This document shows positions 26,801-29,800 of a DNA stretch of 64,000 bases, piece by piece. The number at the start of each line of letters is the position of its first letter. The first letter of the stretch is position 1. The position numbers and the translations under genes were made by a program. The stretch is from Macrostomum lignano (Eukaryota). The stretch covers positions 558,001 to 622,000 of the forward strand of contig NIVC01000089.1 of NCBI GenBank assembly GCA_002269645.1, read 5' to 3'. The notes below the pieces were generated by a model. That model worked only from the letters and a program-made list of their open reading frames with translations. It had not been told where the DNA came from and made no database searches.

Positions 26801-29800
26801 AGTCAAAGCCCCAAACAGACTGAGAGAGCTGCTTCAGTTGCGTCTGTTCTGTAGGTTAGGTGGACCAGCTTCTCTACAGCAATTGAGTTGCAGCTAGCTA
26901 CTTTGAGATCATCAAGCGAAACTCACTTTTCTGGACTCGGTGTCGACGTATTTGCGAGTAGACCGACGATTTTCACCAGGCGATGCGGCCTTCTTCGAGG
27001 CTGGAGTAGCGCCTGCATCCGCGGTAGCGTTGTGCGACTGAGCGCCTTCATCAAGGCGTGATGCAGAGCGCGAACGGCTTCGCGATTTCCGCCCTCTTTT
27101 TGAGGCACCAGTGCGTTCGATTTGGCGGGAACGAAATTCGACCTCAGGCTCCTAGGAAATTAGAGAATAAAAAGACAAGTCAAAGTCGGAAGCTTAAATT
27201 CAAAACCGCTGCCGTGTATCCGTGTGACCCTCAAACAGACTGAGAGAGCTGCTTCAGTTGTGTCTGTAGGTTAGGTGGACCACCTTTTAAGAGTCAAAGC
27301 CCCAAACAGACTGAGAAAGCTGCTTCAGTTGTTTCTGTAGGTTAGGTGGACCACCTTATAAAAGTCAAAGCCCCAAACAGACTGAGAGAGCTGCTTCAGT
27401 TGTGTCTGTAGTTTAGGTGGACCACCTTTTAAGAACTTCTCTACAGCAATTGAGTTGCATGCAGCTAGCTATTTTGAGATCATTAAACGAAACTCACTTT
27501 TTTGGACTCGGTGTCGACGTATTTGCGAGCAGACTGACGATTTTCGCCAAGCGATGCGGCTTGGCGTCTATCACCGTCATTTTGCTGAAATATGTTAGGT
27601 AGTGCTTTCGAATCCGGTTTTTTCGTGTCATGATGTGTCATAGGAGCGGTAGCCTTTTGAGTCGCTTCATTTAGGGCGCTGTCTAGCGTCGGAAGAGTTG
27701 AAATGATTTGGTCGATTTCAGTAAAATTTTTTTTATTCGAAACGAAATCTTGGTGCTTTTGGCTTAATGTTATGTGCTGATTAAAGTCGTCGTAGGCTTC
27801 GCGACAGTTTTCACACCGACCTTTCCGTTTTTCTTTGCCGTCAGGCTTTTGACGATTTTTTTCATCGTTATTATTAGCCCTTGGGTTTGCAAAAATGTCG
27901 ACGACATCAATGTTATCTTTGAAGATTGGTCTCAGCAAATGCTGGGCATCCGTAACAACAACGGCCGGTGGGGTCAAATTCCGATCTTCTTCGGCAAACC
28001 TCCCTGAAGAAATAGTTTTCTGGCACAGCTCGTGTTGAGAAACTTGATCGCGAATTCGATCTCGAAATATTGCCGGAGTGTAGACAGGTATTTGCAGCAA
28101 GCGAGCTTTCGTCAAAATATCTTCGAATGTTTTGACAATTCTGCATTGCGAACTCGAAGTTTGCGTAACGGCTCTCTGCTGCATGGTGAAACCCCTAGAA
28201 AACTCCGAAAAAGATTGTTTAGCTTCAATGGAGACAGCGGAATCGTCAGCGATGATTAAATCAACCTGGAAAAGCAAAAAATACGAGCCCATAGCTACAA
28301 AAAATCTATCAACGTCTCTAATCTGCCCTATTAACAAGCAACAAACAAAAACAACGAATGCATTGCAAAAACTACACACCTCATTTGAAAAAAACGAAGC
28401 AACGCTTCCGCCATAATAGACGACGGCAGATTCCAGCTTCTTTTGTCGCTTTTGACTTTCGCCGTACAGAAAAAAAACTCGCTTCCCTCGAAGAGAATCC
28501 AATGTAAACTGCTCGACCAAACAGCCCTGTAGAAACTAAAATAAAAAAAAATTTCTCACATATTACTCCATTACGGAAACGCCTAAACAGTACATAAGTT
28601 TTGACTGTAGGTTAGGTGGACCACCTTCTAAGAGTCAAAGCCCCAAACAGACTGAGAGAGCTGCTTCAGTTGTGTCTGTAGGTTAGGTGGACACCTTATA
28701 AGAGTCAAAGCCCCAAACAGACTGAGAGAGCTGCTTCAGTTGTGTCTGTAGGTTAGGTGGACCACCTTATAAAAGTCAAAGCCCCAAACAGACTGAGAGA
28801 GCTGCTTCAGTTGTATCTGTAGGTTAGGTGGACCACCTTCCAAGAGTCAAAGCCCCAAACAGACTGAGAAAGCTGCTTCAGATGTGTCTGTAGGTTAGGT
28901 GGACCACCTTCCAAGATTCAAAGCCCCAAACAGACTGAGAGAGCTGCTTCAGTTGTGTCTGTAGGTTAGGTGGACCAGCTTCTCTACAGCAATTGAGTTG
29001 CAGCTAGCTACTTTGAGATCATCAAGCGAAACTCACTTTTCTGGACTCGGTGTCGACGGATTTGCCAGTAGACCGACGATTTTCACCAGGCGATGCGGCC
29101 TTCTTCGAGGCTGGAGTAGCGCCTGCATCCGCGGTAGCGTTGTGCGACTGAGCGCCTTCATCAAGGCGTGATGCAGACGCAGAGCGCGATTTCAACTTTT
29201 TCGAAGCCTCAGACTGGTCGAGCTCAGGAGAACGAAATTCGACCTCGGGCTCCTAGGAAGTTAGAGAATAAAAAGACAAGTCAACGTCGGAAGCTTAAAT
29301 TCAAAACCGCTGCAGTGTATCCGTGTGACCCTCAAACAGACTGAGAGAGCTGCTTCAGTTGTGTCTGTAGGTTAGGTGGACCACCTTCTCTACAGCACTA
29401 CTAGGCGATAATCTGAGTCGGAATGCCTAGAGACCATTCATTTACACAGTGCAGACATTCTGATCTCATGATGGACCAGCTCGCTTTCTAAGAATCTGTT
29501 CTGATTGCATTCCAAGAAACGGAAACATTCCCGCACTAAACTTTCAAGACAGCTCTGACAGCCAAGGCCCCAAACAGACTGAGAGAGCTGCTTCAGTTGT
29601 GTCTGTAGGTTAGGTGGACCACCTTTTAAGAGCTTCTCTACAGCAATTGAGTTGCAGCTAGCTACTTTGAGATCATCAAGCGAAACTCACTTTTCTGGAC
29701 TCGGTGTCGACGTATTTGCGAGTAGACCGACGATTTTCACCAGGCGATGCGGCCTTCTTCGAGGCTGGAGTAGCGCCTGCATCCGCGGTAGCGTTGTGCA

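Follow-up and report, generated by a model that had tools for sequence, protein, structure and literature searches.

What place does a homolog of DBF4, the regulatory subunit of the Cdc7 kinase, have in the midst of a transposon? The question is raised by residues 27498–28526 of a stretch of 64,000 nucleotides from Macrostomum lignano (NCBI GenBank assembly GCA_002269645.1, contig NIVC01000089.1, positions 558,001 to 622,000 of the forward strand), which was analysed as a whole and is called the window in the following. A first-pass annotation, made from the letters alone, had read the segment as a DBF4 homolog of about 305 amino acids with all three DBF4 motifs, AT-rich like a nearby open reading frame (ORF) of a tyrosine recombinase, and carried as cargo by a transposon within an intron of another gene, taken to be MED25. 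We consider it rather probable that the segment is a host-derived DBF4 module within the recombinase gene of a Crypton-like element flanked by (GTCT)n microsatellites, where it would link the recombinase to Cdc7 and to DNA replication.

Identity of the DBF4-like segment

The limits of the segment coincide with exon boundaries, an acceptor (tttctacag/G) at 28526 and a donor (AAA/GTGAGT) after 27498. The two spliced exons comprise 915 nucleotides, or 305 stop-free codons, where 17 stops are expected at the base composition of these exons (P for none = 1.6e-8, analytic estimate), and the spliced product is 100% identical to the UniRef entry A0A1I8HXN8 ("DBF4-type domain-containing protein"). Motif C, the zinc finger, is recognized by the Pfam family zf-DBF (PF07535; E=5.4e-16, 58.8 bits for a cut-off of 24.8) and, using phmmer against the PDB, by yeast Dbf4 (E=4e-6) and human DBF4 (E=6e-4). 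Motif N, once its intron is removed, gives a sub-threshold match to Pfam BRCT (E=1.2e-3, 19.5 bits for a cut-off of 21.3). An AlphaFold model of the product, built on 11 DBF4 sequences, reaches predicted local distance difference test values of 70–80 in the N domain and 91–94 in the zinc finger. Searching structures with this model in Foldseek retrieves the Dbf4 HBRCT domain (5t2f, probability 0.92–0.99; 3qbz, 0.95), the Dbf4 chains from structures of the Dbf4-dependent kinase (DDK) with MCM (yeast 7p5z_G, E=2e-5) and human DBF4 (6ya8_B).

Within the alignment of the 11 DBF4 sequences, all ten invariant columns are kept in the element, namely F45 and R73 in motif N, D155 and P162 in motif M, C200, C203, H213 and H220 in motif C, together with E201 and D234; motif M was aligned to the consensus L.PPFIKVED.S..YRP. 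The three motifs follow each other in the usual order and at the usual spacing. As first read, the segment is thus a genuine homolog of DBF4 that possesses all three motifs. It does not have a start codon of its own, beginning instead at a phase-0 acceptor, nor the long C-terminal tail of DBF4 proteins; it ends approximately 10 residues past motif C in an exon tail and donor of the type found elsewhere in the element.

Derivation from the DBF4 of the host lineage

An exhaustive HMMER search with the segment over 1.84 billion representative proteins yielded 129 matches from the DBF4 family, none of which contains the recombinase domain of the element. The closest is a protein of M. lignano itself, BOX15_Mlig017237g1/g2 (E=5.7e-14). 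This host DBF4 is 594–597 residues in length, GC-rich and endowed with the long C-terminal tail, and it is found on three contigs, adjoining an Ariadne E3 ligase gene. BLASTP aligns the two proteins with 30% identity across motifs N, M and C; in the conserved blocks, the element is 38% identical to the host DBF4 and 27–34% to DBF4 from other animals. Both genes are interrupted by an intron at the same position and in the same phase 0 (FFSNE/VDLII in the element, FFSKQ/VDCLI in the host). The similarity stops some 10 residues after the zinc finger (LPTLDSAL vs. LTPLAEAL), and from ATQKATA onwards the second DBF4 exon (exon b) is homologous to the first exon and to the repeat exons (exons B) of the element, splice donor included. 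Since the closest relative is Mlig017237, with the same intron position and phase, we conclude from these comparisons that the DBF4 piece of the element stems from the DBF4 of the host lineage and was captured at the DNA level.

A mobile unit bordered by (GTCT)n

A second copy of the unit carrying these exons was reached via the GenBank protein P0003 and lies on the Mlig_3_7 scaffold NIVC01000029.1 (locus L001). Residues 1906–18209 of L001 are collinear with residues 37510–20991 of the window at 99.2–99.9% identity, and beyond the unit there is no match on either side, the flanks being unrelated. The two copies differ in the number of B units and in a nested Tc1/mariner transposon at 31516–33182; the latter is present in the window and absent from L001, hence its insertion is recent. 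At its borders, L001 has (GTCT)n at 1508–1905 (5' end) and only (GTCT)3 at the 3' end. A sister element occupies residues 8826–17994 of locus L002 (Mlig_3_7 NIVC01000850.1), a unit of about 9 kb within the span of an annotated gene with Ank/ARM repeats. Its borders are (GTCT)n at 8826–8868 at the 5' end and over 340 bp at the 3' end. The microsatellite therefore flanks both ends of every M. lignano insertion examined (window, L001, L002), and in the three insertions it has the same orientation at both ends, as read on the coding strand of the element.

Neither terminal inverted repeats nor long terminal repeats were found in the element, only a subterminal inverted motif of 10 nucleotides. Within the terminal 100 nucleotides or so, the window element and the sister have in common GTGTGTTTRCGTRGAC, AGCCTCGTTAGCKGGACC and GTGGACCAC at the 5' end and TGGTCCACSTAACGCATT ... 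CACACA at the 3' end. According to blastn, the 5' terminal region is the sole non-coding stretch of the window element that matches the sister, no other non-coding similarity between the two being detectable.

More distant relatives of the recombinase, located on metagenome contigs, likewise occur as near-identical copies of several kb with differing flanks. One of them (P0007, 30% identity to the window recombinase in the family alignment) lies in a block of 8.4 kb found twice among ENA metagenome contigs (L007 1931–10321 and L008 1984–10384, 99.6% identical, different flanks). Microsatellite borders were not found in the metagenome relatives L004–L008, whose junctions are without clear short repeats, and the association with (GTCT)n is established only for the two M. 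lignano subfamilies.

The recombinase

The recombinase ORF encodes 767 residues (24528–22225, minus strand). It has no match by sequence in Pfam or the PDB and is recognized by structure comparison alone: the ten best Foldseek matches of its AlphaFold model in the PDB are all tyrosine recombinases, such as XerA, IntI and the S. aureus integrase. Alignment of 20 family members reveals the conserved catalytic residues R339/R340, K388, R459, H482 and Y494 (numbering of the 767-residue ORF). In these 20 members, Pfam DUF3504 gives no match at E up to 1, and Phage_integrase does not rise above noise. The relatives, at 23–35% identity, include gene models from bivalves and beetles as well as metagenome proteins. 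The recombinase of the sister element (P0005) has 50% protein identity to that of the window and is organized differently in its N-terminal part, with a chromodomain first, followed by two repeats of about 130 residues; the introns of L002 contain satellites of 83–85 bp. A repeat of 42 nucleotides is present in about four copies in the coding sequence for the C-terminal region of the window recombinase (22329–22532).

All long ORFs seen in 20991–37510 belong to the recombinase gene or to the nested Tc1; the Pfam scan was made on the main ORFs only. There is no ORF of reverse-transcriptase length in the element, and at least ten introns are retained and kept in both copies. A DIRS or Ngaro retrotransposon was considered and rejected on these two grounds. 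Given a protein with the fold of tyrosine recombinases, no reverse transcriptase and introns that are kept, the unit is a mobile Crypton-like element. The tyrosine-recombinase transposon of the first-pass annotation is thus borne out by a unit present at two loci at least, with unrelated flanks.

The DBF4 exons as a probable part of the recombinase gene

On the minus strand of the element, the exons (Table 1) follow each other in the order start exon, four exons B, two DBF4 exons, two exons B, zinc-finger exon, recombinase exon and last exon. All ten of the exons chosen have canonical splice sites and compatible phases, and joined together they give 1654 stop-free codons, or 1726 if a sixth exon B is included.

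The Mlig_3_7 annotation in GenBank was derived from a genome-guided RNA-seq transcriptome (PMC5730564). Its model P0003 (BOX15_Mlig000236g2, 1222 residues) leads from the tail of DBF4 exon b through four exons B to the zinc-finger and recombinase exons, and its start (MTHHDTKK...TESKK) represents the last 48 codons of exon b. Just past the zinc finger, a run of eight A residues at window position 27734 is reduced to seven in L001 (at about 9908). P0003 starts at MTHHDTKK because this shorter run shifts the frame, so that the longest ORF opens at the next ATG; in the window copy the DBF4 exons are open throughout. The UniProt model P0001, on its part, starts exactly at the first DBF4 exon (exon a) and joins both DBF4 exons to an exon B. 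Since the exons are compatible in phase and P0003 splices the DBF4 tail into the recombinase, the DBF4 exons are probably a domain of the recombinase gene and not free-standing cargo. The initial idea of cargo therefore holds insofar as DBF4 lies inside the element; a free-standing gene does not agree with the missing ATG, the tail and donor of element type and the splicing into the recombinase in P0003.

Codon usage and constraint

The GC content at third codon positions (GC3) of the DBF4-like coding sequence is 0.42, practically that of the recombinase ORF (0.425), vs. 0.64–0.66 for the host DBF4; other host exons in the window have values of 0.73–0.87. The AT-richness noticed at first sight, and its likeness to the recombinase ORF, is thus also found in codon usage. 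Element-like GC3, an intact ORF and the kept invariant residues argue for a long residence of the segment under purifying selection inside the element.

Weighing of the alternatives

Several observations weigh against a functional DBF4 module in a mobile recombinase gene. The DBF4 exons of the two copies are without a single substitution, for which reason the ratio of nonsynonymous to synonymous substitution rates (dN/dS) is not computable. Motif M has diverged both in the element and in the host DBF4, neither of which has FIKVED or W-P. The run of seven A residues puts the DBF4 exon of L001 out of frame, be it by real mutation or by an assembly error in a homopolymer. A transcript running from the start exon through the DBF4 exons to the recombinase was not seen; of the DBF4 exons, P0003 includes only the last 48 codons, and the UniProt models are 5'-partial. 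Copies found amount to two of the DBF4 type and one sister, and both gene models passed a GenBank filter that removes transcripts overlapping repeats, on account of which the family is low-copy and could be partly domesticated. Finally, an empty insertion site was not recovered: a homolog search with the host exon at 17508–18017 for homeologous loci or the empty site gave no match. Exact look-up of the two UniProt models of DBF4 type gave no contig on record.

The simplest alternative, an ordinary host DBF4 that happens to lie within the intron of a different gene, would account for the motifs and for the presence of an intron. It is hardly credible in view of a separate, GC-rich DBF4 in an ordinary gene neighbourhood on three contigs, of a segment without start codon and without DBF4 tail that is spliced to exons of the element, and of the same mobile unit at two unrelated loci. 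Indeed, the first-pass annotation had accepted that a sole DBF4 in the genome would be the host gene, and the tests that it named rule out this nested gene. Nor is it at all probable, low copy number notwithstanding, that the unit is not a transposon and that we are dealing with a domesticated family of recombinase genes with DBF4 or chromodomain modules, spread by segmental duplication in a recently polyploid genome. The models are kept in the "core genes" annotation, duplicated blocks with ≥95% identity make up 180 Mb of the assembly (PMC5730564), and host genes derived from Cryptons are well known (PMC3212892). However, identity ends exactly at (GTCT)n at both ends in both copies, as it does in the diverged sister, and the termini are conserved whereas the interior is not; the family has kept the full set of catalytic residues, which domesticated DUF3504 genes have not (PMC3212892), and the relatives on other contigs act as multi-copy elements.

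The remaining two alternatives accept the transposon and concern the role of the piece. It may be an inert captured fragment, comparable to those in Pack-MULEs and Helitrons, transcribed and spliced by accident and devoid of function, as one would expect of a truncated copy of a host gene with a one-nucleotide indel in the L001 DBF4 exon and a low copy number. We hold this to be improbable: the frame is open over 305 codons, none of the DBF4-invariant residues has been lost although identity to the source gene is down to 30%, splicing signals and phases are undamaged, and the codons have gone over entirely to the usage of the element, a shift that implies prolonged retention by purifying selection. 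A less remote alternative, albeit an unlikely one, is a free cargo gene, whose short, separate protein would activate or sequester Cdc7 and shift the cell cycle of the host in favour of the element, in a manner that the first-pass annotation had likened to viral inducers of S phase. One route to it is trans-splicing of a spliced leader onto the acceptor at 28526. The spliced leader of M. lignano ends in ATG and about 30% of the genes are trans-spliced (PMC8629364); exon a being in phase 0, an in-frame start would result, and P0001 begins exactly there. Exon b, however, ends without a stop in the strong donor common to the repeat exons, both P0001 and P0003 splice on into exons B, with P0003 reaching the recombinase, and a start provided by trans-splicing would still lead to a fusion of DBF4 with the recombinase unless an unseen polyadenylation site intervenes.

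Proposed origin, mechanism and significance

For the DBF4 module within the recombinase gene, we propose the following course of events. The element would move by means of its own tyrosine recombinase, (GTCT)n at its junction recombining with (GTCT)n microsatellites of the genome. Its single large gene is a phase-0 string formed by the start exon, Ser/Arg-rich repeat exons of 72–75 residues with satellite-filled introns between them, and the zinc-finger and recombinase exons. This gene would have taken up, as DNA and together with one intron, the first 250 codons or so of a DBF4 from the host lineage. The piece comprises motifs N, M and C and little else; the break lies some 10 residues past the zinc finger, at the fusion to the exon tail of the element. 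The piece would then have acquired the AT-rich codon usage of the element, the invariant DBF4 residues being kept. As it has taken on this codon usage with the invariant residues preserved, it most likely forms a translated part of the recombinase, either internally or at the N-terminus, presumably in a single protein.

Of the Dbf4 motifs, M and C serve to bind and activate Cdc7 and N serves to bind partners in checkpoint control and at origins, whilst DDK docks on MCM double hexamers, as seen in the structures retrieved with the model of the segment. By analogy, the module may dock the recombinase onto the host Cdc7, onto partners of motif N, or both, at licensed or firing origins, and such docking would link excision or integration with S phase or with DNA under replication. 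The sister protein has a chromodomain in the corresponding N-terminal region, as would suit a swappable role in chromatin tethering. Binding of Cdc7 and coupling to replication are what we infer from the known functions of these motifs. The more specific proposal, namely that the recombinase recruits or activates Cdc7 at MCM-loaded origins through its own DBF4 and that transposition is thereby timed to, or aimed at, replicating DNA, is put forward tentatively and may well prove wrong.

Our literature search found no paper linking DBF4 or zf-DBF to a transposase, a transposable element or a tyrosine recombinase, nor one linking Cryptons to Macrostomum. The N-terminal modules differ between the sister elements, DBF4-derived in one and a chromodomain in the other, and we did not find the combination of (GTCT)n at both ends, swappable N-terminal modules and in-frame capture of a core cell-cycle regulator reported together. 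If the module does recruit Cdc7, we would have the first case known of a mobile element appropriating a core regulator of replication initiation, and a possible explanation would be at hand for the gain in copies by Crypton-type elements that are cut and rejoined. Binding of Cdc7 would also connect transposition directly, and in a testable manner, with replication licensing or firing, and transgenesis and RNA interference, both available in M. lignano, make the test practical. Moreover, the locus would be a clear case of DNA-level capture in which part of a host gene has since remained under selection within a transposon.

Further features of the element and the window

Table 1. Positions of the element, its exons, borders and internal repeats in the window
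Feature	Positions	Strand	Remarks
Whole mobile unit, approximately 16.5 kb including nested 1.67-kb Tc1	20991..37510	-	collinear with L001, conserved termini
(GTCT)n microsatellite at 5' end of element	37511..37634	-	Tandem Repeats Finder (TRF) and direct reading
5' terminal region with conserved motifs GTGTGTTTACGTGGAC, AGCCTCGTTAGCTGGACC, GGTGGACCAC	37430..37510	-	alignment of three insertions
Candidate first coding exon (MTRKKNKK...TESRK)	35878..36036	-	ATG, GTGAGT donor, phase 0; identical in L001; predicted
Repeat exon B, 75 residues (EPEVEF...TESRK)	35246..35470	-	phase 0-0; exon type used in P0003, P0001
71-bp satellite arrays in introns, palindrome GGTGGACCACC in each unit, alternating with 363-bp B unit and 246-bp unit	25218..35191	.	
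Nested Tc1/mariner: helix-turn-helix and DDE_3 ORFs, inverted ends of 219 nucleotides (99% identity)	31516..33182	-	absent from L001
Repeat exon B, diverged but open	30531..30740 (approximate)	-	
Repeat exon B, 72 residues	29691..29906	-	
Repeat exon B, 72 residues	29037..29252	-	
DBF4 exon a, first half of motif N (GKRVFFLY...)	28380..28526	-	phase 0-0; 100% identical in L001
Intron inside motif N, 114 nucleotides, GT..AG	28266..28379	-	one intron between the two DBF4 exons
DBF4 exon b	27498..28265	-	rest of motif N, motif M, motif C, element-type tail with donor
Motif M	27977-27888	-	within DBF4 exon b
Motif C zinc finger	27830-27693	-	within DBF4 exon b
Repeat exon B	26927..27151	-	after DBF4 tail in models P0001, P0003
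Repeat exon B	25488..25712	-	
Exon with acidic region and first CxxC...HxxxxH zinc-finger-like motif	24580..24970	-	junctions match P0003, P0004
Main recombinase exon: second zinc-finger-like motif, core-binding and catalytic domains, 42-nucleotide coding repeat	22314..24491	-	
Last coding exon and stop	22028..22242	-	matches P0004 C-terminus, parallels P0005
3' terminal region: TGGTCCACGTAACGCATT (inverted copy of 5' TTACGTGGAC), CACACAGACAGTCGTAAGAGT	20991..21075	-	alignment
(GTCT)n microsatellite, 1.6 kb, at 3' end of element	19351..20990	-	TRF

The palindrome GGTGGACCACC of the satellite units is also found near both termini of the element. The element contains 49 of the 53 GTGGACC sites of the window, where 6.5 are expected by chance, almost all of them in one orientation; the satellite arrays may, speculatively, be arrays of protein-binding sites. 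The largest intron harbours a repeat (30880–31520 and 33178–34300) into which the Tc1 is inserted, and the same repeat occurs in L002 at 24779–25862 with 76–80% identity and in opposite orientation. The ORF at 33950–33630 was considered as a hAT dimerisation domain and set aside for want of Pfam support.

Outside the element, the Pfam-recognized host exons are those of a thiolase C-terminal domain (6072–6452), ERF4/GOLGA7 (7994–8332) and a ubiquitin C-terminal hydrolase (57423–57998). MED25, the name first given to the surrounding gene, could not be confirmed: no match to MED25 was found for the flanking ORFs by Pfam at E up to 10, by phmmer of the concatenated ORFs against the PDB or by homolog search. 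An intact Ty3/gypsy-type gag-pol ORF of 1297 residues (protease, reverse transcriptase, RNase H, integrase) with a coding repeat of 24 nucleotides at its 3' end lies at 47579–51472, and an RNase H ORF at 43278–43838. Mini- and microsatellites are unusually abundant in the window (49 TRF rows, each scoring ≥200); many of them are located between GC-rich exon-like ORFs, and one is an array of 4.7 kb made of a 35-nucleotide unit (747–5484).

Comparison with known systems

With DBF4, Dfp1 and chiffon, the regulatory subunits of Cdc7, the element piece has in common motifs N, M and C, a matching structure and, with the host DBF4, an intron. Unlike them, it stops just past motif C and lacks a start codon, lies inside a recombinase gene, uses AT-rich codons and travels with a mobile unit.

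Among transposons, Cryptons come closest; they reportedly go back to Goodwin et al. 2003. Like the M. lignano element, they have a tyrosine recombinase as sole transposition enzyme, no reverse transcriptase and an intron-bearing gene; they are without long terminal or inverted repeats, use short direct repeats at their ends as recombination substrates and may have extra domains fused to the recombinase (GCR1_C in CryptonF). In the M. lignano element, by contrast, the direct repeat is a whole (GTCT)n microsatellite, the size is far larger (16.5 kb), with satellite-bearing introns and repeated exons, and the recombinase has no match to DUF3504 or, above noise, to Phage_integrase. We know of no Crypton reported with a DBF4 or chromodomain module. 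Integration of Cryptons is modelled as recombination between short identical sequences at the end of the element and at the target (Kojima and Jurka 2011, PMC3212892; PMC9977147). Their activity was shown in Chlamydomonas; for eukaryotic DNA transposons with tyrosine recombinases in general, activity has been seen only recently and the gain in copy number is unexplained (PMC9977147). Endogenous nimaviruses have tyrosine recombinases that insert into tandem (telomere) repeats (PMC10871703). Here the common points are a eukaryotic tyrosine recombinase, a C2H2-type zinc-binding region and insertion at short tandem repeats; nimaviruses, however, are large viral genomes with (TAACC)n as target, whereas the M. 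lignano element is without viral genes and associated with (GTCT)n.

The module itself recalls the tethering modules of integrases and transposases. These include the chromodomains of chromoviruses, the interaction of Ty5 integrase with Sir4 and that of Tn7 TnsE with the sliding clamp. Such modules are alike in being an added protein-interaction part that could steer the place or time of action of the enzyme, and the sister element indeed has a chromodomain; in the M. lignano element, tethering is putative and the module is of the type of a DDK regulatory subunit, for which we know of no tethering example. Finally, Pack-MULEs and Helitrons are DNA transposons that capture fragments of host genes. 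Uptake of host exons at the DNA level, with the intron retained, is common to these and to the M. lignano element, whereas in the latter the reading frame of the captured exons continues into that of the enzyme and the exons appear to be conserved.

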